Shown piece after piece: positions 10,790 through 43,200 of a stretch of DNA of 64,000 nt. The position numbers and the translations under genes were made by a program. The notes below the pieces were generated by a model. The model ran no database searches. It was given only the letters and a program-made list of their open reading frames with translations, and had not been told where the DNA came from. This stretch comes from Cyanophora paradoxa CCMP329 (taxonomy: Eukaryota; Plantae; Glaucophyta), in NCBI GenBank assembly GCA_004431415.1, contig QPMI01000515.1:186001-250000 (forward strand), read 5' to 3'. Every line of letters starts with the position of its first letter. Within the stretch, counting starts at the first letter, position 1.

Positions 10790-13281
10790 AGCCCGGCCGC
10801 CCGCCTCACCTTCCGTTCGGCCCGCAGCGCTCGCAGGGAGTCCCTCAGTACCCCCTCCCGAGCCGCGTCGCGCGTACCCCCCAGCTCCCGCAGCCGCGCG
10901 TCGATCAGCACCCCGTAGAACCCGACCTGGCGTACCCCCCTGCGTCGGAGCGGGGATGGAAGGGGCGGGGGGTACGCGGACCGCGGCGTGGGCGAGCTGT
11001 TGGGCCTCGTCGGGCGCTGGAGCCCCCTCCGCGAGGGCGCGCAGGACGCCGATCGCCCCGCGGACGCGCCGCTCGTGCTCCTCAGCGCTGAGTGATCCCG
11101 AGACCCGAAGGCACTCGGCTGCGCAGAGTCAGACCGGATGGCGAGCCAAGCGAGCGAGCGGGAGGAGGGGAGAACCCGCCTCCGAGCACGCGGGCGCTGG
11201 CTGCGAGGGCGGCGGCGCCGCGCCACGCGCCCCCGCCGGCCTCGCGCCGGCCGACGGCGCCCGCTATCTTTGCCGCCCGCTCCGCAAAGCCCGCGGCCCG
11301 CGCCGCCTCGGGGCCCGAGCCGCGGCCCCCGCGGAACAGCGCCTGCGCCATCAGAAAGGCCGCCTCTGCGTACTCGAACCTGCGGCCGGCTGCGGGTCAG
11401 CCCGGGCGGCCGGCCGCGGCGGGCTCCTAGGAGTGCTGGCGCCCGCACCGCCGCACGAGGGACGGCTCGCGCGCCGCCTCCTCCAGCGCGGCGGACAGGA
11501 CCCGCTCGGCCTCCCTGTACCCCACTCAGGGGGGTACGCCTCCCTTGGGCCCGGGCGGGGGGTACCGGTGGTCCCGGAGGGCGAGGGCGTGGCGGGCGTA
11601 CGCGACTCCCGCCGCGAGGCGCGCCGGCGGCCCCGTCGCCTCCGCGAGCTGCGCGGCGGGTCGGGCCGGGCCGGTCGGGCAGGTCGGGCCGGTCGGGGGC
11701 GGCGGGGCGCTGACTTCGCTGCGGAGCCGCAGGGCCCGCTCGGCCTGATCTCGCCCCGCCTCGGCCCGGGCGTGCCCGCGCCTGTCGCCGGAGCGCGCGT
11801 GCAGCTCCGCTTCCGCCCTGCCGCGCGCCGGCGGCGTGGGTCTCGGCGGGGGCGGCCGCGGCGGGCGGGGCGGGGCGGCCGGGGCGGGGCGGGGGGAGGG
11901 GGGGTACCGGAAAGCGTCCCGCGCTTCGGCGTACTCCCGCAGCAGGAGGAGCAGACCGCCCTGCGCCTTCGGCGGTCAAAGGCCCAAGGGGTGGAGCGGA
12001 AGGGGGGTACGCGCCTCGACGGAGCAGGCCCTACCCAGGAGCGACTGGGCCTCCTCGGGGGGGTACGGCGGGTCCGGGGCGCGCTCCAGAGCGGCCAGCT
12101 CGTCGCGGACGGCGCGCAGGGGTACCAGCGCCTCCCGCGCGGCGCGGGCCGGGCCGTCCCCCGCCGGGAGCCCCCCTCGAGCCCGCCTGCCGGCCGGTCA
12201 GACTCGATCCGAAGGGGCGGCGCGGGCGGCGCGGCGCGGCGCACACGCGTACTCCCGAGCGAGCGCCGCGCGGTCGAGGGCGGCGCGGTGCGCGCGCAAG
12301 CGGCGCTCGCCGTCATCCTGGACCCCCTGCACCTGCGCATGCCCCAGGGCGGCGGCGTCGGCGGCGGCAGGGCGGGGCGGGGCGGGCGGGGCGGGGGCGG
12401 GGGCGCACCAGGCGTTCCCTGCCCTCCAGGACGCCCCCGGCGAGCCGGAGGAGTTCCGGTGCGAGCTCGTCGCGCGGGGCGCCGGCGTGGAGGCGCCGGC
12501 TGCGGTCGGGCCCGCAAAGAGCCTGCGCGCGCCGCGCCCCGGGGCAGGCCCGCAGTGAGCGAACGAGCGTCGCGAGCCCGGCCCCGCCGCGCTCGACGCG
12601 GCCGGAGGCCTAGGCTTAGGGCGCCCGGCCGCACGCACCGCAGCGCGGAGAGCCAGCCGAGGAGGAAGAGGCAGAGGCGGTGGAGCGCGTACTCGACGAG
12701 GCCGCGCGCCTCCGCCCCGCGCGCCTCGTCGGCCGCCGCGACCGCCGCCCACCCGAGCGCCAGCGCCCGCCCGCAGTCGACGTCCCGCCGCGCCGCCGCC
12801 TTCGCGCCCCCCGCGAGCTCATCCATCGCGTCGCACCTGCGCGGGCGCGCGCCGCCGGTCAGCTCCGGCGAGGCGTGCGCGAGCGCGCGGCTCGGCGGCG
12901 ACGCGCACAGACAGCACACGCGCATGTCCCGGTCTCCCGCGGCCTTGTACTGCTGCGCGGCGCGCCTGTAGAGGCGGGCGGACTGCCTGCATGCCCGCGA
13001 TCCCATTCGAATCTCAGAGCGCCAGGGCGCACTGCAGCAGCTGGGCTGAGCGGCCGCGTAGCGCACCTGTGCATCTCGCTCTCTGAAGCTTCCCTCGCGC
13101 TCTCTACGATCTCCTGGGCTTCGCTGAGGGATCTGGCTCTCGCTCCGGTGCTCGAAGGGCCCGATCGCCTCGCCCGCTCCTCCTCGGCGCCGAGGAAGTT
13201 CCTGCTTGCGACTGGGCGCTTTGCAACGGCGCCCGCCTGCGGCACGCGGCCCGAGTCGACGCGTTCTCCCGCCCCGCGCAT
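9994..13281 (-). CDS. Multi-exon hypothetical alpha-helical protein
   Basis: Coherent exon peptides (SARLYRRAAQQYKAAGDRDM; GLVEYALHRLCLFLLGWLSAL; VGFYGVLIDARLRELGG) separated by C-rich introns. No family recognised; both ends are approximate. Confidence 0.5.
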
Positions 13282-13614
13282 GCGCCGGGCCGAGTTCGCG
13301 CCACCTAGATCAGCGCCGCCTAGATCAGGACCGCCGATCAGGGTCGCGCGTAGCGCTTGCTGCGCTTCGCTCGACGCACCCGGCCGCGGGGCCCATTCCA
13401 GCTGCGCCGGCGTTCGAATTCCGAGGTTCTCGGGGTACCGATATCACCCGGTGGGGGGAGAAGAAATCAAGCCGGCCAGCTGCGGCGTGCGCGCATCGCC
13501 GGCCCGCCGCCGTCGAGTTGCAGGCCAGGTTCGTCGATGTGGCGACATGCTTCGAATTCAAGATCTCGCGCGCGCGGCGCTGCCTGATTTCGAATTTTAA
13601 AAGTTTCGCGCAGA

Positions 13615-16600
13615 ATGGATCCGGAGCTCGAGGAGAAGAAAGCGCGAAGGAAGAACAAGAATGCGAAGGATCCGGAGGAGCCGGGGAAGGAGCGCGTGAG
13701 CCGGAAGAGCTCGAGAGGCTCGGGCGTCGATTTCCGCCTCGTCTCAGAGCCCGCCCCGCTGGAGGTTTCTCTTTCTCGCGCAATTCGTCGTTCGACGAGC
13801 TCGAGGATGGAGCCCGCGGCCGTTTTCGTGCAGGAGCCCGCGACTGCAGCCCGTCGCAAGCCGGGCGCAGATTTTGCAGCGCGCCCTGGCAAGAATTGCG
13901 GCTCTGCAGGTGCTGCTGTTCATTTCGCGACCCACCTTCGTTCATCATCGCTCTAACACTGCTAATCGCAGATCTAGATTCCATCGAGACCTCGAGCCCG
14001 CAATTGCGAACGAGTACGCGCGGCAAAGCTCGGCGCTCGACGGAGCACGGAGAAGCGCTTCTCGCAGGCCACGTCCAGCCGCAGCTGCAGCCGCAGCCGC
14101 AGCCGCAGCGGCGGCCTTCTACAGCGAAGCCGCCTCTGGCTTTCGGCTGCCGCGTCGACGTCCCGAGCTCCCGGCAGAGCTCAGGCGCGTCGACAACCCA
14201 GATGCATGCGCAGCTGCAACCGTTGACGTCGTCCCCGTTCGCTTCGCCTCGAGCAGCTTCATCGATATCGGCGCCGATGCGGAGGGCTTGGCTCGATTCC
14301 GAGAGGTCGCCACTGAGCCCGGATCCGGAGCCAGCGCTTGGCTGTAGCGGCGGCTCCCGCCGGCAGCGGAGCGGCCGGTCGCGATCGCGATCGCGAGGCG
14401 AACTGGCCGCGGCCGCGGCCGATCACGATCACGATATCTGTCGCGAAGAGCTGCTTCTTTCGCAGATCGCCGAACTGCGCGAAAGCAACGAGGTAATCAA
14501 ACGCAGTTGTACTGCAGACGATCGACTCAAATGTTTGATTTACACGCTGCCCAATTTCGCAGAGCATGGCGAAAACGCTGGAGAGCGCTGTCAAGGTGCG
14601 GGATTAATTTTCGCACACATTAATATTGCCCCTCTATGTACCCTTCAATAATAACGCGCGCGCCAACTCTTAATTCTCGGCTGCAAAACAAGGACGCGGA
14701 GCAGGCTCGCAAGGTGCGAAAACAGACGAGAATCGAAATCGCGACGCGACGTCGACCCATCGTCGATCTCCTGGAGCTCCGGATCCAACTCACGCACATT
14801 TCTGATGACCGACGCAACGCCCCGAAACTCGCGCAGGACGCGGAGGGGTCGGAGCAGCTCGTGCAGTACGCGTTCAAGACGGAGGAGCGCCGAATCGGGC
14901 AGCGCGTTCAAGAGGCCCTCGCCGTCGCCCGGCTGCAGCTGCAGGTCCGTGTTCTTTAATTTTCAGGATATACATCGATCCCAGATCGATCGCGTCCTAT
15001 AGCTACATATTCAATCAAAATTAATATTCGCGCCCGTCGTCTTCAAGTACATCTAGCTTAGTAGTGGCCATGGCCAGGGGCGCTGTGTAGAGATAACGAT
15101 AACTGGATCTCCGGAATAATTCTCACGGCTTCTTCCTGATTCTAGCAATTCTTCGAATTCATATCACGGCTCACTCTTGATCAGAGTGGGAACGTGGGCG
15201 CTGCAGCTGGCGCCGGCGCGCCGAATTCGAAGCCTCCCGCATCCCCTTCGCGATCGATTACGGCCCTCCAGATCCGCATGCACGAGCTCGCTTCTCCGGG
15301 GGCGCACGAGGCGGATCCGGATTCGGAGCGGCAGCGCACGGCGCGGTGGGCGGCGGGGCTCCGCGCCGCCATGCGCCAGCGCGAGCTCGAGGAGACGGGG
15401 GCGGACGTAGGCGTACGCGTGGGCGATCGCGAGCCCGATCGCGATCGCGAGGTGCGCGTTTCTTCGCGGCTGTTAAGTATAATGGCCTCTAAAATCTAGA
15501 TGCTCGTGAGGCAAGCTTAAGCTTTAAGTCGACGTCATGTGAGATGACCTCGCTATCGATGGGGGCGACTCATGCGCGTGACATGCGCTATCGAATTGAT
15601 CTGCAGGGCGCCGGGTTTACATTCGAATTCAGATTAAAAAGTATTCGAATTCCGAGACGCTGCGACCGCAGATGCAGCCGATCGCCCGAGCGCGAGAGAG
15701 CACTAGAACTGTCGATCGCGACGTCGACGTACGCGTGGACTCCGTGCAGCTCGCGATCGCGAAAATCGAGGCACGCGATTATATCTCTCTCTGATTCTCG
15801 TTCGCGCTTGCAATTGCCAATAATAATCCGTGCAGCTCGCCCGGAAGCCCAACATCGAATCCGTCGAGGGCGAAGTTGTCTTCGGCGGCGAGCGCGCGCC
15901 AGGAACCCCCGCGAAAGTCGAGGCAAGCGGTTGCCTCTCGGATTCTATCCGAAAACCACTGCGCGTTCGGGCTCTGAGTCCGGATGCCTTGGTGCATGCG
16001 CAGGAATCTCCGATCGATATCGATATCGCGAAACTTGCTCCCACGTATGCAGCAGCAGCCGCAATGCAAATTTCGCGTCTTCGGTTCCCTCTTGACGCAT
16101 GGCCATCGATCCGAGCACAGATCCATCGGCCCGCGCTCGAGTTTACGGGAGCTCGCCAATTCGGATTCGTTCCTGCATGCGAACGCCGGCGCCTCAAGCG
16201 CGGAACTAGACATCAAGGCCTATGCAGAGGTCTTCGAATTCGACATTATATATTAATATTGCGGCGCATTTAATTCCTTTCGTGACTGGAAGGCGAGCTC
16301 ACTTCAAACTCAGAATCAGGCGCAGTTGCGCAACCTGCAAGAGATCGTGCGCATCCGCGCCTGCTCTATTCAAAATTTAAAGCTGCGATTGTGATTGAAA
16401 ATGCGAATTTCGCGTACGCGCACTTCTACCGTACAAATTAGAACGACGCGCGCGCGCGCGCGCGCGCAGGCCTTTCTCCGGCAAATGGCGCACTCTTCGA
16501 CGCCCGCATGCGCAGCTGCAGCCGTCCTCCCGCGCCACACCGCGGACGTCAGGGCCCGGGCCCCTCCCCTCTCTGCCGTGCACTTCGAAGCCGCCGCTGC

Positions 16601-29615: not shown

Positions 29616-30320
29616 TAGCATAGACTCGGACTCCCGGGTCCGAGACTCCGAGTCCCCGATCGCCGAGTCGGACTCCCCGTCCGACAGTCACGGCGTCGCG
29701 GCCGCGGCCGCTAATTATAAGTGAGAAAACTACATATATTTGATAATATATATATTTGCGCAATATGAAGAATTCATTTATTCATCATTAATTAGCCGCA
29801 TGCGCGCAGATATATACTATGAGATGTATTATGTATATATTTACAAATTACATTGGACTGTTGAAAAGTACGTATACCGCGCTGTATATAGCTACCGTAT
29901 AATTATATACTTAACTTAGTAAGCTTAGCGTTGCATATGAACTGCTTCAGTAAGAATCATTATATATACGTAACCGCCAGTTGCACTGTACGCAACTTGC
30001 ACACTGTGATTTAGTGCTAAAGGTTTTTAGGCGATCTATAATATTTTGTTTTCAAATATTTCCAGCGCCTGTATATATGCATGGCCGGAAAAGCCGAGAA
30101 TTCTTAGAGGTAGTCCCGTCTCTTTCAAGTTTCGAGCCGGGCCCGGCGCGGGGCCCTGCGAAGACGTCGACGTCGACTGACCTAGGCCTAGGCTACTAAA
30201 AATTTACGTTACGTACCAGCTGCGCGCTAAACGTCCCGTCTCCGCCACTCCGCCGGCGCCAATCCGCCAAAGCCAGCTACCGGTGTAGATCTGGAAAAGC
30301 CCTGCGAAGAGTCGCCGAAA

Positions 30321-30366
30321 ACGTATACGTACGTATACGTATACGTATACGCGTACGTACGTATAC
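30321..30366. repeat. Palindromic TACGTA/TACG microsatellite upstream of the homeobox gene (copy at ~37770-37815)
   Basis: ACGTATACGTACGTATACGTATACGTATACGCGTACGTACGTATAC. Confidence 0.8.
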
Positions 30367-30819
30367 TAAATTTTTGCCAGCTGCTTAAATTATATTTTAA
30401 GCCAGCTTGTGGCACTTTAATTAATTTTGGTGAAGTAATAATTATTTTCCTGTGTTGAATTAACCATTTCAGTAACGTGCACTGAGCTGCGCCGCTGCTA
30501 GCGCTGCGGCCCTGAATGCGGGCAACTGATGCAGACCTGCCTCGGGGCTAGTTCGCAACGGACGGGCTGCAGAGGAGGTGGCTGCTGCGAGCGAGCAGCG
30601 AGGAGGAGCGGCGCGAGGAAGCTTCCAGGTGCGCGAGCGCGCCGGCCTGCTAGTGACGCGGAAGAGCTCTATCCAGCAAGACGGCCCCCCCCCCGGTGCC
30701 GGCGCAGCGAAGGCCCGACCAACCGGCGACCACCGCTGAGTCGGCGCGTTTTGCGCAGAGGTGTCTGGCGTGTCTTGGTCTTGCTCGTCTCTGTTCGTCT
30801 CTGTTCGTTCGCTGTGGAG

Positions 30820-32939
30820 ATGGTCGCTTCAGTGGATTCCGTACTGGGCAGTCCCGTTCTGCACTCGGCGCCCTTGCCCTCCAACACGCCGTTGAACAGG
30901 GTTAGTGGGCCCTTCTGCATGTTCTCGTTGCCGGCGACCGTTGCCCGCGGCCCGCCGATGTCGGATTCTGACTGGAACAATGCAGCATACTTTTGGGCTC
31001 TGCAATCGAATCGCCGACGAGGAGTCCTCTCTGGTGCCGCAAGAGAATCTTATGATCATTCTCGACCTCGGTCAGGCGCACACCAAAGCCTGCGTCGCGA
31101 CGCAGTGCTCGCCGGCATGTTCGTACCGGGGCAGCGAAGGAAGCATGAGCAGCAGCAGCTCGTTCTGTGAAGCGCCGTCTCCCCCGTCGTCCTTCGGCGA
31201 ATCCCTCGGCTCGCCAAGCGGCAACGCGGGTATTACGGAAGACCTGACTGTCCTCGACATCAGCGTTGAGGACAGTCTCCTGTACGAGACTCTGGCCAGC
31301 GATGCAGATTTAGAGCAGCCTGCAGCGTCTCCGCGTCCCTCCGGCTTCAGCGAGCGCCCGTTCCCGGCGAAAGTCGACGACGGAACTCTCTTTGCGCCCG
31401 CGCGCTCCGCCGAACCGGCCTCGCCTGCATTTCATGGTGTCCGCTTTTCGTTTAGCGTTGCTTCCGGCGGATCTGACGCTCCTCGCAGCCGCCGTTGTTA
31501 TCGAGGATCCTCTGGATCTGGTTCTTGGGGACGAGCCGCTGCTGGATCGCAAGCTCCCGCTCGAATCCACCATTTTCAGGACAGAGAGCGCTCATGACGA
31601 GTTCACGTCGGACGATCTCTTTGGTCGCGCCGCCAAGCGCCCCCGGACGGTTCGATCGACCCGCCTCCGCGCCTGTTTCATCGCACAGCTCTAAAGCCCG
31701 TAGCAGGAGCACGCGGAGTCGGTCGAGATGACTTTCCTCGAGTGCGAGATGGACACCGGCACGGTCAAGGGCGAGCCGTCCGAGTGCGGCGGCGAGTCGA
31801 TCTGCGGCTCGCCGGAGGCGGATAGCATGTTTCTCGAGACATCCGACTGCGACACGCAGGAGCAGCTGCAGGCTCTCAGCTCGGAGATCTCGATGATGGA
31901 CGACTCTGCCCGCCGCCTCATCGCGCAGGCCCTCTACAGGCTCTCGGCCGCGGCCGCGCCCGATCAGAACGACCCTGTAGCGTCCCTCGAGCCTCTGTTC
32001 CCGCGCTCCGTCGCCGTTGCCGTCGCCGCGGCCGCGTCTAATGCCAGCGGGCTCCTGGTGACGGGATCCGGCCGGAAGCGGCGCGTCGCCGCTGCGACGC
32101 CGGTGGAGCAGCGCGCGATGGACGCCGTCGCTGAGGCGCACCGCCGCTCGGACCGCGCCGTCGCGCGCATCACTTTCCTCGTCGATTTCGACCCGGAGTC
32201 GTTCGCCGTGGACGCCTCTCCCGCCCCCGCGCCGACCTCCGCCCCCGCCCCGCCCGCCCCGTCCGCCTCCATGGCGTGCCCCGGGCCCGCCAAGCCCCCT
32301 GTCCCCGGCCAGCCCACCCCGCCCCGGGTTCGCGCGCCTTCCCCCCCCCCCCCCCGGCCCCCCCCGGCCCCGCCCCCGCCCCCGCCCCGCAGACTTGGAC
32401 TCTCTGTCTGACCGACCGACTGCCGTACCCGCTGCAGAAGCGCGTCTTCTTCACCGAGGACCAGGTCCGCAAGCTGAACACGTACTACGAGAACCTGGCG
32501 GGCAACAAGTGTACCCCGATGGAGATCGCCTCCATCGCCTCCGACGTCGGCTTGACCGAGCACCAGGTACCCCCCTTTCTTTTCTTTCTTTCTTTCTGCC
32601 CTTCTCCCCTTCTCTTATCGGTCCTCTTATGTTACGCCCGCGCAGGTTCGGATCTACTTCCAGAACAAGCGCGCGCGCACCCGGAAGCCCTCCTCGTCCT
32701 CCGGCGGATCGGGCTGCAAGACGCCCCTGAGCTCGCCCCCGGCGCGCGCCATGCAGCCGCCGGTCTCGTTCCTTCCCCCGTCCACTCCGGCCAGCGCCGC
32801 CCAGAGCCCGGCGGCGTCGCCTATCGCGAGCCCCCTGCCCCCGCGGGCCGCGCCCTCCCCGGCCTGCAGCCCGCAGCTGCCCCCGGCGGCCGCCGTCCGC
32901 ACCAGCAGCACTCTCACTATCCGGCTTCCCGTCGCTTAG
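30820..32939 (+). CDS. Homeodomain transcription factor with upstream LNK-like motifs (copy 1, apparently intact)
   Basis: Spliced KRVFFTEDQVRKLNTYYENLAGNKCTPMEIASIASDVGLTEHQ|VRIYFQNKRAR with intron 32567-32646. First intron ~30901-30985 splices in frame. Stop TAG at 32937-32939. Confidence 0.88.
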
Positions 32940-34094
32940 TAGCCGTTTCCGGCCTACGACGACAATGTCGCTTAGTAGCCGTTCCGGCCTGCGACGACAA
33001 TTTTGAACCTTTCCATGTCATATTTTCCTCTTCGCAGATCGCATGTAACTCACATAATCTTATCTTTCCATTTAGCTCCATACCGTTCAATTATCCTCTT
33101 GGTTCCGTGGCGACGAGGGCCTTTGGGCCCGTGTCGCGTGTAAGTAAGAGAGGGACAGTCACAGTTCGGGCGAGGCCCGGCGTCAGGCCTGCCAGCCTGT
33201 TTTTTCGCCGCGCCTCGGTCCAATGATGATGTATCTTGAAGATAGTTCCTTTTAGTATCTCTGAAACGATAGCAGGGTTTTTATATTGGCTCTTCCTGCT
33301 GTTTCATTTCTGTTCAGTTTATCTATTTAGTCTTTCTCGAAAGGCACAATCACTTGACGCACTGCTGTCAGGAGCTTCTCGTAAGGAGCTCCGCAGCCTC
33401 ATAATCGCGCTGCTAGGGCCTAGGGAGTTAACCCTCCATGTGTACGTGGTAGGGTGGAATCCACACAGTCTTAGTTGTAGCGGCCTCCCCGCTTCGTTGG
33501 ATGCACAATCGTTGCATAGCCCAGATGTATATGTATGAATTCAGTCCCTAGTACTGCTCCTGCCTGCTAATTGACGCTGGCCCAACTACCCCATGGCCAT
33601 CCGGGAATCCGGATCTTCTCACGGCGCCGGCAATGCCCTTATAATTACGCCTCAAGCTCGCGCCGCCATATGCATATATATACTATAGTAGCTATGGGCC
33701 CGGGCGAGTAGCTCAGCGGCTTGCGCTAGCTGGGACGTCGACGTCGACAGCAGCTAGCGCTGCAGTGCACGCGCGTATGCGCATGCATATGCAGGCGGCC
33801 CCGCGGCCGTGCCACGGTGCGATCGCAACGCATATGACTTCTTTTATATAGCTACGCATGCAATTTGCACATAACACGTAAACGCGCGCGACACGAGTCG
33901 ACGTCGGTGGGCGGACAGGGCGGGCATGTACAGGGGCGAGCCCTGCTTGCTCCCAACGCGCGGCGGGGCTTGGAAGAATAAGGTAGTAATAGCTGTTTAC
34001 CAGTCGAACGACTGGGGACGCGGGTCGTGATCGCGGGTCGCCCCCCGCCTCCCCTCCGGTCCGAGAGGCATACACACATACGTATAGAGGCCGG

Positions 34095-37000
34095 CTACTT
34101 TGCGGCACCCAAAGAGGACTCGGCGAGGCGGCGCACGAGCTTTTCCAGGCCGTCCAGGCGAGAGCTCTGCTTGAAGACCTGTGGGGAAGGAGGTCGGATC
34201 GAATCTAGGAGAAGGGGCGCGTGGGGGGGTACAGGGACGCGCCTCGTTGGTGATCTTGTCGATTGAGTCGCCGGAGCCGCCGCCGCCGCCGCCGCTCTCC
34301 GCCACGCGCCGCGCCTCCGACGCCGCGTGCTCCACCTCGTCCATGCGCTCCGCCATCCCCGTCAGCGCCTCCTGCGCCCAGAAAAGAGAACGAAGTCCGC
34401 CTTAGCGAAAAGGAGGCCTTGAGCAGCGCGCGCGCCCCGGCCCGGCCCGGCCCGGCTCGCCTTCAGCTCCGAGATCGATTGCCGTACCCCCCGCGACTCC
34501 GCCGCGATCGTCTCGACGACGCCCTTGACCTGTACCCCCCTCCCCGCTCAGAGACGCGACGGAAGCCTGTACCCCCACCAACCCGACCCGGCGGACCTTC
34601 TGCTCGAACGCGGTGGTACCCGTCACGACGCGCTCGATCGCCTCGCGCGTGGCCGTCTCCAGCCGCTCTATGCGTGCCATGAAATCCTTCATCTCCTCCC
34701 GCGTCTTCCCCACCTGGGGGATACGGCGTTAGGAACGAGGGGGAAGGAATTGGGAGGGGGTACGAGGCGGGCGAACCTTCTCCATCTCGCGCTTGAGGCG
34801 CTGCAGGAACTTGCCCGCGAGCTGCTCGGCGGCCTGCCGGTTTCGGCCCTCCCACTTCTCCAGCTCGCCCTGCGTAGCACTTCGTATTAGTGAATTCGCA
34901 CACACCGAGACAATACGGCTAATGATAGAACTGAGGAGTCCGTAAAGTGTCAAGTCGAAAGATGAGCCTACTGGTTACGCCGGGTAGGGAACCTATCAGC
35001 CATCGGACAGGGTGGAGCTAGTCAAGGAGACGTAAACGAAAGCAAAGCTAACCCAGAGCAGAGAGCTACTACCTATACATCTAGCCTAGCTTAGGACTAG
35101 GCTACCGAGAGGACTACCCAGGGTCTACGAGAGGGAGGTAAATTAAAACACTACTACTGCTAGTGCTGCCTGCCTAGGGACCGTCGGGACGTCCGGAGCT
35201 CGCGGGCTGTTCTACTGTACGGTAGGAAAGCCAGGACGGACCCGCGGTCTAATCTGCCTACTCTCGACGCGGCCGCGACTACAGCTAGCGCGGCGGGCTC
35301 CGCGTCGAGGGGGCCGCTCGCCCGAAGCGCGGGTGGAAGCACGTCGGCGTAGAGGGCCGAGGGGAATGAGGCGAGGGGGACGTTGCGGGAAGAAGTGGGG
35401 CGGGACGGAGAAGGTCGGCGCCGGCCGTGGCGGGGAGGGGGAGGGTCGGATTTCTCGGTCAGCAGGGCTTCCAGCCTCGAACCAGCCGCCGCACCCCCGC
35501 CGCGGGCAATTGCGAGCCCCCTCCGCGGCGGTCCTTCAACCCACGGTCCTGGCACGATGGCCGGGGTATCTGGTGGGTGCAACGACCAGCCGAAGCCTTC
35601 CGCCAAGCCTTCCGATCCATCGTTCCCTCCCTGTCGAGGCGCGAGGAGCGCGGGCGAGGTCGTGAATGGGAGGCAGGGCCAAGAGAGCGAGCGGGAGGGC
35701 AGAGCGGGAGAGGGAGGCAAGGCAGGCGCTCGCTTGGCGGGGCCCAGCGAGTCGGTCGGGGCGGCTATATCTAGTGTGTGCGAGGCTAAGAGTAGATCAG
35801 GTAAGTTTCTCGAGGACTAGGTATGGTGAAGTAGTAGGTAGGTGGTGTCGAGAGTCTCCTCCCGACGTAGCCCCCCCCCCCCCCCCCCCCCCCTTTCGCG
35901 CGGCTCGGGGTACCGTTTAGAGCGGGCTAGGATGTGACTCCCAAGGGCGTACCTTGACGCAATCGTAGAGCTCTTGGGCGCGGAGCGCCGCCTTCCAGCC
36001 CGCGTACTCCGGTGGGCAGTCTGCGTTCCGAGCGGCGTTGAGTAGATTGTGAAGGCGAATCGGCCCGTCGCAGGCGGCGCAGACTTCCTTACAGGTCCGG
36101 GGGCCGCGGGCCCGCTCTTGTGGGGGTACGGCACCTGGATGTCGACGGGTACGAGCTGCACGTCGCCAGCCTCGGTGGCCGTGCCGTCGCCCACCTCGCT
36201 CCCGAACACGATCTTCTCCATGCTCTCCATTTGCTGTCGTACCCCGGGATGAGCGTTGGGGGGGGGGGGGGGGGCGGAAGGGGACGTAGAAGGCTCACCG
36301 CGAGGACCGCCCCGGCGGGCCCGGGGCGCCCTGGGCACGGAGGCCCCTCGGCCGGCGCGGCCGGCGCGGCGGCGGCAGCGGCGGCCGGCGGCGGTGGCGG
36401 CGCGGCCGCGAGCCTCGCGAGCGCATCGTCCAGCCTGGCCTGAAGCGAAGCAACGGCCGCCTCGGCCGCCGCCAGACGCCGCCTGTCCTCCTCCGACATG
36501 CCGGCGGAGGCGGGGCGGAGGAGGGGAGGAGGGGCCGGGCCGGCGGCGCGTGCCGCTCGACGGCCGCCGCGATGCGCGCCTCGAGGGCTGGCGCCTCCAG
36601 TCCGGCCTCCGCCATCGCCCGGGCGACCGCGGCCGCCACACGCGCCTCCACCGCCGCAGCCTGGTCCGCCGCCGCCGCCGCCTCTTCCGCCGGCCTCGCC
36701 TGCGGAGGCGGCGCGGCAGTCGCCGCGCCGGCGCTCGCCAGCTGGTCCGCCTGACCCTTCAGCTCCTTGGCCTAGCTCCGGATCAGCGAAGAACGAAGCG
36801 GGCGAAGCAAGCAAGCGAGCGAGCTATCTTTAGACTCACCTGCTTGCGGACGTCCTCGAGGGTCCTGTTCACGAGCTCGAGCTGCTGCGCCTGCTGCTGC
36901 CGGTTGCTCTCCAGCCGCGCCTCCACCTGGCGGCGGAGAATTAGAATAATTAGATCTCCTCCGAAACATTAGATCCCCCCCCCCCCCCCCCCCCCCCCCA

Positions 37001-37239
37001 ACTTTCTGCCCTCTACCCCCCCCCCGTACCTTGACCCAGCGGCTCTCGTCCTCGGAGGCGAGCCGCTCGAGCTGGCCGACGAGGCGGGAGACCTCCTCCT
37101 GCACCTTCTTCGCCACCGTCTGCGTGCCAGGCCGGGGAGGAGTCAGAGAGGGACCGCGCCGTGTTCTTCTTCTCGGGCGGGGGGCGGAGACGATGCGGCC
37201 ATCGCAGCATCGCTGCGTGTCCGTAGATAGATAGATAGA
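34095..37239 (-). pseudogene. 5'-truncated duplicate of the coiled-coil gene, also interrupted by an insertion
   Basis: Matches 41538-43478 but lacks all exons upstream of the duplication breakpoint. Confidence 0.8.
34884..36117 (-). mobile_element. 1234-bp insertion unique to copy 1, replacing 24 bp of intron
   Basis: Copy 2 reads GCACTTC-AGGCTCGGATGGGGGTACCGAATG-TTGTGGGGG, and in copy 1 the middle part is replaced. No TSD or TIR. Pro-rich ORF remnant at 35160-35720. Confidence 0.6.
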
Positions 37240-40200
37240 ATTAGCCGCATGCGCGCAGATATATACTATGAGATGTATTATGTATATATTTACAAATTAC
37301 ATTGGACTGTTGAAAAGTACGTATACCGCGCTGTATATAGCTACCGTATAATTATATACTTAACTTAGTAAGCTTAGCGTTGCATATGAACTGCTTCAGT
37401 AAGAATCATTATATATACGTAACCGCCAGTTGCACTGTACGCAACTTGCACACTGTGATTTAGTGCTAAAGGTTTTTAGGCGATCTATAATATTTTGTTT
37501 TCAAATATTTCCAGCGCCTGTATATATGCATGGCCGGAAAAGCCGAGAATTCTTAGAGGTAGTCCCGTCTCTTTCAAGTTTCGAGCCGGGCCCGGCGCGG
37601 GGCCCTGCGAAGACGTCGACGTCGACTGACCTAGGCCTAGGCTACTAAAAATTTACGTTACGTACCAGCTGCGCGCTAAACGTCCCGTCTCCGCCACTCC
37701 GCCGGCGCCAATCCGCCAAAGCCAGCTACCGGTGTAGATCTGGAAAAGCCCTGCGAAGAGTCGCCGAAAACGTATACGTACGTATACGTATACGTATACG
37801 CGTACGTACGTATACTAAATTTTTGCCAGCTGCTTAAATTATATTTTAAGCCAGCTTGTGGCACTTTAATTAATTTTGGTGAAGTAATAATTATTTTCCT
37901 GTGTTGAATTAACCATTTCCAGTAACGTGCACTGAGCTGCGCCGCTGCTAGCGCTGCGGCCCTGAATGCGGGCAACTGATGCAGACCTGCCTCGGGGCTA
38001 GTTCGCAACGGACGGGCTGCAGAGGAGGTGGCTGCTGCGAGCGAGCAGCGAGGAGGAGCGGCGCGAGGAAGCTTCCAGGTGCGCGAGCGCGCCGGCCTGC
38101 TAGTGACGCGGAAGAGCTCTATCCAGCAAGACGGCCCCCCCCCCCGGTGCCGGCGCAGCGAAGGCCCGACCAACCGGCGACCACCGCTGAGTCGGCGCGT
38201 TTTGCGCAGAGGTGTCTGGCGTGTCTTGGTCTTGCTCGTCTCTGTTCGTCTCTGTTCGTTCGCTGTGGAGATGGTCGCTTCAGTGGATTCCGTACTGGGC
38301 AGTCCCGTTCTGCACTCGGCGCCCTTGCCCTCCAACACGCCGTTGAACAGGGTTAGTGGGCCCTTCTGCATGTTCTCGTTGCCGGCGACCGTTGCCCGCG
38401 GCCCGCCGATGTCGGATTCTGACTGGAACAATGCAGCATACTTTTGGGCTCTGCAATCGAATCGCCGACGAGGAGTCCTCTCTGGTGCCGCAAGAGAATC
38501 TTATGATCATTCTCGACCTCGGTCAGGCGCACACCAAAGCCTGCGTCGCGACGCAGTGCTCGCCGGCATGTTCGTACCGGGCAGCGAAGGAAGCATGAGC
38601 AGCAGCAGCTCGTTCTGTGAAGCGCCGTCTCCCCCGTCGTCCTTCGGCGAATCCCTCGGCTCGCCAAGCGGCAACGCGGGTATTACGGAAGACCTGACTG
38701 TCCTCGACATCAGCGTTGAGGACAGTCTCCTGTACGAGACTCTGGCCAGCGATGCAGATTTAGAGCAGCCTGCAGCGTCTCCGCGTCCCTCCGGCTTCAG
38801 CGAGCGCCCGTTCCCGGCGAAAGTCGACGACGGAACTCTCTTTGCGCCCGCGCGCTCCGCCGAACCGGCCTCGCCTGCATTTCATGGTGTCCGCTTTTCG
38901 TTTAGCGTTGCTTCCGGCGGATCTGACGCTCCTCGCAGCCGCCGTTGTTATCGAGGATCCTCTGGATCTGGTTCTTGGGGACGAGCCGCTGCTGGATCGC
39001 AAGCTCCCGCTCGAATCCACCATTTTCAGGACAGAGAGCGCTCATGACGAGTTCACGTCGGACGATCTCTTTGGTCGCGCCGCCAAGCGCCCCCGGACGG
39101 TTCGATCGACCCGCCTCCGCGCCTGTTTCATCGCACAGCTCTAAAGCCCGTAGCAGGAGCACGCGGAGTCGGTCGAGATGACTTTCCTCGAGTGCGAGAT
39201 GGACACCGGCACGGTCAAGGGCGAGCCGTCCGAGTGCGGCGGCGAGTCGATCTGCGGCTCGCCGGAGGCGGATAGCATGTTTCTCGAGACATCCGACTGC
39301 GACACGCAGGAGCAGCTGCAGGCTCTCAGCTCGGAGATCTCGATGATGGACGACTCTGCCCGCCGCCTCATCGCGCAGGCCCTCTACAGGCTCTCGGCCG
39401 CGGCCGCGCCCGATCAGAACGACCCTGTAGCGTCCCTCGAGCCTCTGTTCCCGCGCTCCGTCGCCGTTGCCGTCGCCGCGGCCGCGTCTAATGCCAGCGG
39501 GCTCCTGGTGACGGGATCCGGCCGGAAGCGGCGCGTCGCCGCTGCGACGCCGGTGGAGCAGCGCGCGATGGACGCCGTCGCTGAGGCGCACCGCCGCTCG
39601 GACCGCGCCGTCGCGCGCATCACTTTCCTCGTCGATTTCGACCCGGAGTCGTTCGCCGTGGACGCCTCTCCCGCCCCCGCGCCGACCTCCGCCCCCGCCC
39701 CGCCCGCCCCGTCCGCCTCCATGGCGTGCCCCGGGCCCGCCAAGCCCCCTGTCCCCGGCCAGCCCACCCCGCCCCGGGTTCGCGCGCCTTCCCCCCCCCC
39801 CCCCGGCCCCCCCGGCCCCGCCCCGCCCCGCCCCGCAGACTTGGACTCTCTGTCTGACCGACCGACTGCCGTACCCGCTGCAGAAGCGCGTCTTCTTCAC
39901 CGAGGACCAGGTCCGCAAGCTGAACACGTACTACGAGAACCTGGCGGGCAACAAGTGTACCCCGATGGAGATCGCCTCCATCGCCTCCGACGTCGGCTTG
40001 ACCGAGCACCAGGTACCCCCCTTTCTTTTCTTTCTTTCTTTCTGCCCTTCTCCCCTTCTCTTATCGGTCCTCTTATGTTACGCCCGCGCAGGTTCGGATC
40101 TACTTCCAGAACAAGCGCGCGCGCACCCGGAAGCCCTCCTCGTCCTCCGGCGGATCGGGCTGCAAGACGCCCCTGAGCTCGCCCCCGGCGCGCGCCATGC

Positions 40201-43200
40201 AGCCGCCGGTCTCGTTCCTTCCCCCGTCCACTCCGGCCAGCGCCGCCCAGAGCCCGGCGGCGTCGCCTATCGCGAGCCCCTGCCCCCGCGGGCCGCGCCC
40301 TCCCGGCCTGCAGCCCGCAGCTGCCCCCGGCGGCCGCCGTCCGCACCAGCAGCACTCTCACTATCCGGCTTCCCGTCGCTTAGTAGCCGTTTCCGGCCTA
40401 CGACGACAATGTCGCTTAGTAGCCGTTCCGGCCTGCGACGACAATTTTGAACCTTTCCATGTCATATTTTCCTCTTCGCAGATCGCATATAACTCACATA
40501 ATCTTATCTTTCCATTTAGCTCCATACCGTTCAATTATCCTCTTGGTTCCGTGGCGACGAGGGCCTTTGGGCCCGTGTCGCGTGTAAGTAAGAGAGGGAC
40601 AGTCACAGTTCGGGCGAGGCCCGGCGTCAGGCCTGCCAGCCTGTTTTTTCGCCGCGCCTCGGTCCAATGATGATGTATCTTGAAGATAGTTCCTTTTAGT
40701 ATCTCTGAAACGATAGCAGGTTTTTATATTGGCTCTTCCTGCTGTTTCATTTCTGTTCAGTTTATCTATTTAGTCTTTCTCGAAAGGCACAATCACTTGA
40801 CGCACTGCTGTCAGGAGCTTCTCGTAAGGAGCTCCGCAGCCTCATAATCGCGCTGCTAGGGCCTAGGGAGTTAACCCTCCATGTGTACGTGGTAGGGTGG
40901 AATCCACACAGTCTTAGTTGTAGCGGCCTCCCCGCTTCGTTGGATGCACAATCGTTGCATAGCCCAGATGTATATGTATGAATTCAGTCCCTAGTACTGC
41001 TCCTGCCTGCTAATTGACGCTGGCCCAACTACCCCATGGCCATCCGGGAATCCGGATCTTCTCACGGCGCCGGCAATGCCCTTATAATTACGCCTCAAGC
41101 TCGCGCCGCCATATGCATATATATACTATAGTAGCTATGGGCCCGGGCGAGTAGCTCAGCGGCTTGCGCTAGCTGGGACGTCGACGTCGACAGCAGCTAG
41201 CGCTGCAGTGCACGCGCGTATGCGCATGCATATGCAGGCGGCCCCGCGGCCGTGCCACGGTGCGATCGCAACGCATATGACTTCTTTTATATAGCTACGC
41301 ATGCAATTTGCACATAACACGTAAACGCGCGCGACACGAGTCGACGTCGGTGGGCGGACAGGGCGGGCATGTACAGGGGCGAGCCCTGCTTGCTCCCAAC
41401 GCGCGGCGGGGCTTGGAAGAATAAGGTAGTAATAGCTGTTTACCAGTCGAACGACTGGGGACGCGGGTCGTGATCGCGGGTCGCCCCCCGCCTCCCCTCC
41501 GGTCCGAGAGGCATACATACATACGTATAGAGGCCGGCTACTTTGCGGCACCCAAAGAGGACTCGGCGAGGCGGCGCACGAGCTTTTCCAGGCCGTCCAG
41601 GCGAGAGCTCTGCTTGAAGACCTGTGGGGAAGGAGGTCGGATCGAATCTAGGAGAAGGGGCGCGTGGGGGGGTACAGGGACGCGCCTCGTTGGTGATCTT
41701 GTCGATTGAGTCGCCGGAGCCGCCGCCGCCGCCGCCGCTCTCCGCCACGCGCCGCGCCTCCGACGCCGCGTGCTCCACCTCGTCCATGCGCTCCGCCATC
41801 CCCGTCAGCGCCTCCTGCGCCCAGAAAAGAGAACGAAGTCCGCCTTAGCGAAAAGGAGGCCTTGAGCAGCGCGCGCGCCCCGGCCCGGCCCGGCCCGGCT
41901 CGCCTTCAGCTCCGAGATCGATTGCCGTACCCCCGCGACTCCGCCGCGATCGTCTCGACGACGCCCTTGACCTGTACCCCCCTCCCCGCTCAGAGACGCG
42001 ACGGAAGCCTGTACCCCCACCAACCCGACCCGGCGGACCTTCTGCTCGAACGCGGTGGTACCCGTCACGACGCGCTCGATCGCCTCGCGCGTGGCCGTCT
42101 CCAGCCGCTCTATGCGTGCCATGAAATCCTTCATCTCCTCCCGCGTCTTCCCACCTGGGGGATACGGCGTTAGGAACGAGGGGGAAGGAATTGGGAGGGG
42201 GTACGAGGCGGGCGAACCTTCTCCATCTCGCGCTTGAGGCGCTGCAGGAACTTGCCCGCGAGCTGCTCGGCGGCCTGCCGGTTTCGGCCCTCCCACTTCT
42301 CCAGCTCGCCCTGCGTAGCACTTCAGGCTCGGATGGGGGTACCGAATGTTGTGGGGGTACGGCACCTGGATGTCGACGGGTACGAGCTGCACGTCGCCAG
42401 CCTCGGTGGCCGTGCCGTCGCCCACCTCGCTCCCGAACACGATCTTCTCCATGCTCTCCATTTGCTGTCGTACCCCGGGATGAGCGTTGGGGGGGGGGGG
42501 GGGGGGCGGAAGGGGGACGTAGAAGGCTCACCGCGAGGACCGCCCCGGCGGGCCCGGGGGCGCCCTGGGGCACGGAGGGCCCTCGGCCGGCGCGGCCGGC
42601 GCGGCGGCGGCAGCGGCGGCCGGCGGCGGTGGCGGCGCGGCCGCGAGCCTCGCGAGCGCATCGTCCAGCCTGGCCTGAAGCGAAGCAACGGCCGCCTCGG
42701 CCGCCGCCAGACGCCGCCTGTCCTCCTCCGACATGCCGGCGGGAGGCGGGGGCGGAGGAGGGGAGGAGGGGCCGGGGCCGGCGGCGCGTGCCGCTCGACG
42801 GCCGCCGCGATGCGCGCCTCGAGGGCTGGCGCCTCCAGTCCGGCCTCCGCCATCGCCCGGGCGACCGCGGCCGCCACACGCGCCTCCACCGCCGCAGCCT
42901 GGTCCGCCGCCGCCGCCGCCTCTTCCGCCGGCCTCGCCTGCGGAGGCGGCGCGGCAGTCGCCGCGCCGGCGCTCGCCAGCTGGTCCGCCTGACCCTTCAG
43001 CTCCTTGGCCTAGCTCCGGATCAGCGAAGAACGAAGCGGGCGAAGCAAGCAAGCGAGCGAGCTATCTTTAGACTCACCTGCTTGCGGACGTCCTCGAGGG
43101 TCCTGTTCACGAGCTCGAGCTGCTGCGCCTGCTGCTGCCGGTTGCTCTCCAGCCGCGCCTCCACCTGGCGGCGGAGAATTAGAATAATTAGATCTCCTCC

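Follow-up and report, generated by a model that had tools for sequence, protein, structure and literature searches.

A spliced homeodomain gene and its tandem copy

The window analyzed here, a stretch of 64,000 nt from Cyanophora paradoxa CCMP329 (contig QPMI01000515.1), contains a seven-exon gene on its + strand, inside which the segment 31850-32680 falls (all positions are window coordinates; Table 1). The public model of this gene, copy A, is P0001, a protein of 554 aa (EP00741_Cyanophora_paradoxa_P016955, tig00020944_g16376.t1; EukProt EP00741). Three studies contribute RNA-type contigs (runs X1, X4, and X5), and those of each run give one spliced record on the window. These contigs omit six segments, five of them bounded by GT..AG and the sixth at 32327-32436; around the motif exon, single records of all three runs join the raw segments 31706-32326, 32437-32563, and 32643 onward. 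The introns are present in contigs of the DNA-type run X15. Exon borders are given as the contig cuts shifted onto GT..AG. All exons are spanned by single RNA-type contigs, with GT..AG introns and zero mismatches.

Since the spliced contigs of X1, X4, and X5 join exons 5, 6, and 7, a single transcript carries both the motif region and the homeodomain in a single reading frame, as the first-pass annotation of this DNA had supposed. That annotation had also started an intron at ~32186, after the motif exon, and here it was mistaken: The actual intron, 32328-32437, begins about 140 nt later, and the Pro-rich stretch 32187-32327 is therefore a coding linker.

Table 1. Features of the homeodomain gene, its second copy, and the conserved blocks (window coordinates)
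Feature	Position	Strand	Basis
Exon 1 (5′ UTR, no ATG)	30581..30628	+	X4 record 12; GT..AG joint 30625->30756, cut +3
Exon 2, first ATG of the transcript at 30820 (MVASVDSVLG...)	30759..30900	+	RNA contigs; N-terminus agrees with P0001
Exon 3, acidic/Ser-rich N-terminal region	30986..31436	+	RNA contigs
Exon 4, acidic/hydrophobic, basic KRPR cluster at end	31489..31649	+	RNA contigs
Exon 5, conserved TVKGEPSE block, then R1-like and R2-like helices separated by a linker and followed by a Pro-rich linker	31707..32327	+	RNA contigs, translation
Exon 6, homeodomain helices 1-2	32438..32566	+	RNA contigs, Pfam
Exon 7, homeodomain helix 3, Ser/Pro/Ala-rich tail, TAG stop 32937-32939, 3′ UTR	32646..33557	+	RNA contigs
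R1-like amphipathic helix, part matching LNK R1, P0001 260-292, QLQALSSEISMMDDSARRLIAQALYRLSAAAAP	31863..31961	+	hhalign, HMM, AF2
R2-like conserved block, RRSDRAVARITFLVD	32142..32186	+	Conserved in P0001, P0003, P0004
Homeodomain, P0001 414-471, introns 32328-32437 and 32567-32645 within	32325..32687	+	Pfam PF00046
Gene copy B, public model P0006 (g16379)	38031..41000	+	tblastn/blastn; within duplicate 37239-42324
R1-like block: P0001 ISMMDDSARRLIAQALYRLSAAA; P0003 IEQLDDASKRCIMDCLFRLAATA; P0004 IGKLDAAAAAVFREAFYRMAAAS			Family alignment
R2-like block: P0001 SDRAVARITFLVD; P0003 EDVLVLRMMFLPD; P0004 MDRLVLRLAYLVD			Family alignment

Counted exon by exon, the RNA-supported protein has 27 + 204 + 207 + 43 + 97 = 578 codons. 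P0001 is shorter because it removes 31034-31105 as an intron, a 72-nt GT..AG segment (24 aa, VPQENLMIILDLGQAHTKACVATQ) that is kept in the RNA-type contigs of three runs. The 578-aa protein was kept as separate exon translations, with P0001 (554 aa) as the stand-in for the whole protein. The N-terminal half of the protein is acidic, and two basic clusters, KRPR and GRKRR, occur in the chain; the acidic/hydrophobic N-terminal region looks like an activation region.

The gene lies in a 5.1-kb tandem duplicate: Within the window, blastn and tblastn find 29790-34883 repeated at 37239-42324 with 99.7% identity, and each unit carries the whole gene, so that the window holds two near-identical tandem copies. 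The public model of copy B, P0006, is 95% identical to P0001 and falls in the same cluster. Twelve of the 14 differences between the copies are 1-base homopolymer indels, three of which lie in coding exons of copy B; the indels include 31128 (exon 3) and 32831/32857 (exon 7), which would shift the frame of this copy. Short-read contigs, from RNA and DNA alike, match copy A at the indel sites. Because the contigs side with copy A there, the frame defects of copy B may be assembly errors in a gene that is itself intact.

The homeodomain and the motif blocks upstream of it

The translation of exon 5 includes QEQLQALSSEISMMDDSARRLIAQALYRLSAAA (nucleotides about 31857-31955) and, 61 residues downstream in the same exon, HRRSDRAVARITF (about 32139-32177). 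The two peptide strings singled out in the first-pass annotation are therefore both found where they were reported, upstream of a homeodomain that occupies the next two exons. On P0001 this domain scores 47.1 bits with Pfam PF00046, whose cut-off is 22.9 (E = 2.2e-12), and exon 6 by itself is recognized as a homeodomain at E = 4e-5.

The homeodomain is of the Q50 type, with the recognition helix VRIYFQNKRAR, and satisfies the helix 3 signature F-Q-N-(K/R)-R (YFQNKRAR). It shares with Engrailed (PDB 3zob, 1hdd), a Q50 non-TALE protein, the three-helix fold and the pattern LTE.Q(V/I)(R/K)I(Y/W)FQNKRA(R/K). It differs from Engrailed in its length of 62 residues: The alignment with Engrailed-2 (3zob; E = 1.7e-7) shows a two-residue insertion in the loop between helices 1 and 2, together with Tyr in place of Trp48. 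Membership of the TALE superclass was considered and rejected, since the insertion comprises two residues and not three and since Homeobox_KN gives E = 0.21, under its cut-off. No class-specific companion motifs of known plant or animal homeobox classes were seen in the algal protein.

The upstream motif region has no match in Pfam, either by exon or in P0001, and none in a sequence search of the PDB. Genuine LNK ORFs equally match no Pfam family, so the Pfam blank on the algal region is uninformative about LNK. In the AlphaFold models (mean pLDDT 53 and 64), which consist of isolated helices, the algal and the LNK regions show the same order of a long helix, a disordered linker, and a shorter helix. 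The algal R1-like helix is predicted at pLDDT 75-83 and the R2-like helix at 54-62. Hydrophobic residues recur in R1 with a spacing of 3-4, regularly across about 40 residues. Some 125 residues, disordered and Pro-rich linkers among them, separate the R1-like helix from the homeodomain that follows.

Relatives of the algal protein

A search with the homeodomain retrieved a Cyanophora paralog, P0004 (428 aa), and an MMETSP transcript of IMG sample 3300017104, P0003 (348 aa), that also exists in a longer form, P0005 (562 aa). The GC3 of the P0003 transcript is 42%, against 90% in the window gene, which places P0003/P0005 in another species. Outside the homeodomain, the main conserved blocks in the alignment of P0001, P0003, and P0004 are the R1-like and R2-like motifs (Table 1), and the architecture of R1-like block, R2-like block, and homeodomain is present in the paralog and in the other-species transcript (P0003/P0005) as well as in the window protein.

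Searches with the upstream region found no further relatives. Apart from the query protein, the sole hit of an exhaustive database-wide phmmer search with 170 aa of this region was a bacterial beta-repeat surface protein of 4,922 aa, which we rejected as a relative: The match is a chance alignment of 26% identity, multiplied by eight beta repeats. Word-index searches with the exon-5 ORF and with R1 alone gave no relatives, an outcome explained by the length filter and by the lack of shared 5-mers.

A further conserved block lies upstream of R1 and reads TVKGEPSE in P0001 (228-235, window 31767-31790) and TVKAEPSE in P0003 (17-24). It fits the psi-K-x-E sumoylation consensus, with acidic residues after it; the Lys is absent in the paralog P0004.

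LNK proteins and the reference set

Within the circadian clock of plants, LNK proteins act as core morning co-activators, and to our knowledge they have no recognized domain. Homologs occur throughout land plants, and the R1 and R2 regions are required for binding to RVE4/8 and MYB3; a role in contacting RNA polymerase II and FACT has also been reported for them (PMC6356500). The LNK1 interface consists of segments 475-519, in R1 (a helix of about 45 residues), and 544-564, in R2 (NPIDRSIAxLLFH), and the RVE side of it is the LCL domain (PMC10120023). In the literature consulted, reports of LNKs are confined to land plants (PMC6356500, PMC10853006). A BLASTp search of a red alga gave no LNK, and knowledge of green algae is sparse (PMC10853006); an inventory of the land-plant clock is without any mention of LNK (PMC5638080). 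We found no paper dedicated to LNK in algae.

As a reference, LNK genes were pulled from JGI metagenome contigs with a degenerate DNA pattern that encodes LDxx[ST]KxCIxDxL[FY]RLA. All 35 loci matching this pattern (L001-L035) are plant LNK genes or transcripts; the set is narrow, covering two dicot types and grasses, and was selected by a pattern that itself requires consensus residues. R1 and R2 lie within one ORF in 11 transcript contigs. The ORF of one locus, L002, measures 616 aa when counted from the first Met and places R1 at 494-518 and R2 at 552, in agreement with the published interface segments of LNK1. In the ESM atlas, the third match of a query with the C-terminus of L002 bears the name "Protein LNK3."

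The JGI metagenome and metatranscriptome contigs were found to be rich in LNK genes of plant hosts. Genomic LNK loci have an intron directly before the QLD of R1. This intron position is not common to the Cyanophora gene, where R1 and R2 lie in one exon.

Similarity between the algal R1-like helix and LNK R1

Comparison of the algal R1-R2 alignment (A4) with the LNK C-terminal alignment (A3) by hhalign gave a match of 93.8% probability (P = 1.7e-7) over 33 columns, which correspond to the R1 helix. The real alignment scored 47.5, compared with a maximum of 22.5 among 240 column-shuffled versions of A4 (mean 11.1, SD 2.3) and 10.7 for the reversed alignment. The best P-value among the 240 shuffles was 0.0056, which indicates that the P-values are calibrated. 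A profile match to LNK, which the first-pass annotation had called for, is therefore present, significant, and above its shuffle null in the R1 helix. Full-length alignments returned the R1 helix again (P = 1.1e-5), and the comparison of full-length algal and LNK profiles revealed no shared region besides R1.

The strength of the match varies among the algal family members. With the LNK HMM, P0003 scores 20.8 bits, a value matched by none of 20,000 composition-matched shuffles; P0004 scores 6.3 bits (matched by two of 20,000) and the window protein P0001 6.1 bits (65 of 20,000). The HMM aligns R1 in one register across all three sequences, and among the 1,407 ORFs of the window it ranks the two exon-5 copies first and second, at E-values of 2-4. 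By these sequence scores, the window protein alone is a weak LNK resemblance and the least LNK-like member of its family, and significance is reached only at the level of the family. P0003 and dicot LNK R1 have 14 of 24 core residues in common, among them the invariant EQLD, K, CI, D, and L.RLA.

The reverse search gives a clear separation. When an HMM built from the three algal sequences was run against 4,206 natural ORFs from plant loci, the top 35 were the 35 LNK R1 ORFs, with scores of 12-21 bits, and the next ORF scored 7.2. In the ESM atlas feature search, the Cyanophora region and a true LNK region have the identical two nearest clusters among 7.7 million, both of Streptophyta (114 aa with 93 members, and 244 aa with 369 members); the scores are 0.83 and 0.79 for the algal region, below the reliability mark of the tool, and 0.88 for both clusters with the LNK region. 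The algal R1-like helix is significantly similar to the LNK R1 region, and this similarity points to a relationship between the two. The significant match covers one helix of about 33 residues.

The R2-like block holds a collinear position in the same register as LNK R2 (PIDRSIAxLLF), and a relaxed alignment runs on through it, DR over DR. Taken alone, R2 reaches P = 0.053 in hhalign, and an R2-only HMM does no better than shuffles. The spacing between R1 and R2 is 58-76 residues in the algal proteins versus 46 in LNK. The block resembles LNK R2 in sequence, without significance when taken alone.

Comparison with known architectures

Like LNK proteins, the algal protein has an R1-type helix in the same hydrophobic register, whose core in the closest algal member is (I/M)EQLD..(S/T)K.CI.D.L(F/Y)RLA..A; a second short helix downstream, D(R).(V/I)(A/L).(L/M).(F/Y); a disordered linker between the two; and an acidic Ser-rich stretch ahead of R1. 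It departs from them in running on into a homeodomain, whereas LNK proteins are without a DNA-binding domain, work solely via partners bound to DNA, and end about 55 residues past R2, and its N-terminal two thirds show no similarity to them.

The combination of a homeodomain and a helical partner or dimerization module in one chain is known from HD-ZIP and other plant homeobox classes. In HD-ZIP proteins, however, the zipper comes directly after the homeodomain, while the algal helices precede the homeodomain, from which a Pro-rich linker separates them, and are LNK-like, not a leucine zipper; the algal tail at the place of the zipper is Ser/Pro/Ala-rich.

The first-pass annotation had proposed an LNK-type module attached to a DNA-binding domain. 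Of this, the R1 helix and the overall architecture are supported; for R2 taken alone, hhalign gives P = 0.053. It had also called the architecture unfamiliar from the literature, and we likewise found no report in which a DNA-binding domain and an LNK-like module are combined. What is new here is the combination of known parts, an LNK R1-type helix and a homeodomain, in one protein outside land plants.

Interpretation

We consider it probable that the locus encodes an expressed nuclear homeodomain factor that has an LNK R1-related helix and an R2-like helix built in as a putative dock for a partner. Of the readings that we weighed against this one, the first is convergence or chance, in which R1 is a generic amphipathic helix of a lineage-specific homeobox family and has neither common origin nor common partner with LNK. 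Such a reading draws on the confinement of significance to one short helix, R2 failing alone, and on the 6 bits that the window protein by itself obtains from the LNK HMM; the chance match of a bacterial beta-repeat protein to the same stretch shows how easily weak look-alikes arise, and the atlas scores of 0.79-0.83 fall under the reliability mark. It has more difficulty with P0003, a sequence on which the first-pass annotation had not drawn, which has 14 of the 24 LNK R1 core residues and whose score no shuffle approaches, and with the reverse search, which cleanly parts LNK from 4,171 other natural ORFs. Chance would also have to account for the same two atlas clusters being reached from algal and LNK queries, and for another conserved helix downstream, whose order and register are the same in both. 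On this evidence we regard convergence as rather unlikely.

Many homeodomain factors bind DNA as dimers, and this general knowledge, together with the regular 3-4 hydrophobic spacing of R1 over about 40 residues and its prediction as one long helix, could be taken to mean that R1 is a self-association or coiled-coil element that dimerizes the homeodomain protein in the manner of an HD-ZIP zipper and is no co-activator dock. A homodimer prediction for the R1-R2 region scored 0.29 against a mark of 0.32, which weighs on neither side. A zipper would be expected to abut the homeodomain, yet roughly 125 residues, with disordered and Pro-rich linkers, stand between this helix and the domain downstream; moreover, the equivalent helix of LNK binds another protein (PMC10120023). 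Self-association thus appears distinctly improbable as the role of the helix. An artifact of annotation or assembly, with two neighboring genes or a transposon-borne fragment misread as one protein, can be assigned a very small probability indeed. The location of the gene in a 99.7% tandem duplicate with homopolymer indels typical of long-read assemblies and the disagreement between P0001 and the RNA in exon 3 would fit such an error, but in three studies single RNA-type contigs run through every exon without a mismatch, the introns being GT..AG, and the same architecture recurs in a paralog and in an other-species transcript of very different codon GC.

If the locus does encode a homeodomain factor with a built-in LNK-type dock, the homeodomain would tether the protein to TAAT-type sites and the R1 and R2 helices would dock a partner, by analogy with plant LNK, where R1 and R2 bind the LCL helix of RVE/CCA1-type Myb factors; the dock could bridge to a Myb protein or to the transcription machinery. 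DNA binding and LNK-type docking, which land plants split between Myb and LNK, would on the same analogy be joined in one chain. The sequence comparisons suggest that the LNK R1-type module predates land plants and can be carried by a protein that itself binds DNA. A more far-reaching scenario is that the docking module (R1 and R2) came from the Archaeplastida ancestor and was from the outset, or at least early on, part of a homeodomain factor, that land-plant LNKs, having lost or never gained the DNA-binding domain, turned into free co-activators of RVE Myb proteins, and that the Cyanophora protein pairs with a SHAQKYF-type Myb for light- or clock-phased transcription; as a whole we hold this scenario to be unlikely.

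An R1-type helix in glaucophyte homeodomain proteins would move the origin of the module back to early Archaeplastida. The algal protein would then be a natural case of an LNK module on a DNA-binding protein and a simple system for R1/R2 partners. Because a combined algal-plus-plant profile can be built, seeking LNK relatives among green and red algae is now tractable.

Other features of the window

Between 10000 and 14000, the G+C content is 73-80% and both strands hold long, overlapping ORFs of 480-670 aa; two + strand ORFs, 10956-12968 and 13206-14648, were scanned and have no Pfam match. A short TACG/TATACG microsatellite occupies 30320-30365, where many X15 DNA contigs break or branch and the depth spikes to 140.

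Two TAATTA palindromes lie in an AT-rich island at 30418-30444 (37867-37893 in copy B), 140-165 nt before the point where transcription begins. Judged by their sequence, they are candidate homeodomain sites that could allow autoregulation. The window as a whole has 19 TAATTA occurrences versus three expected, a count inflated by AT-rich intergenic islands.

The ORF at 52337-53587 matches 1,3-beta-glucan (callose) synthase (PF02364, E = 3.7e-35) and probably belongs to Cpa|evm.model.tig00020944.35, a gene annotated under callose metabolism that is listed as rhythmic in the Cyanophora diel data (P = 0.0012, phase 19; PMC6374488).
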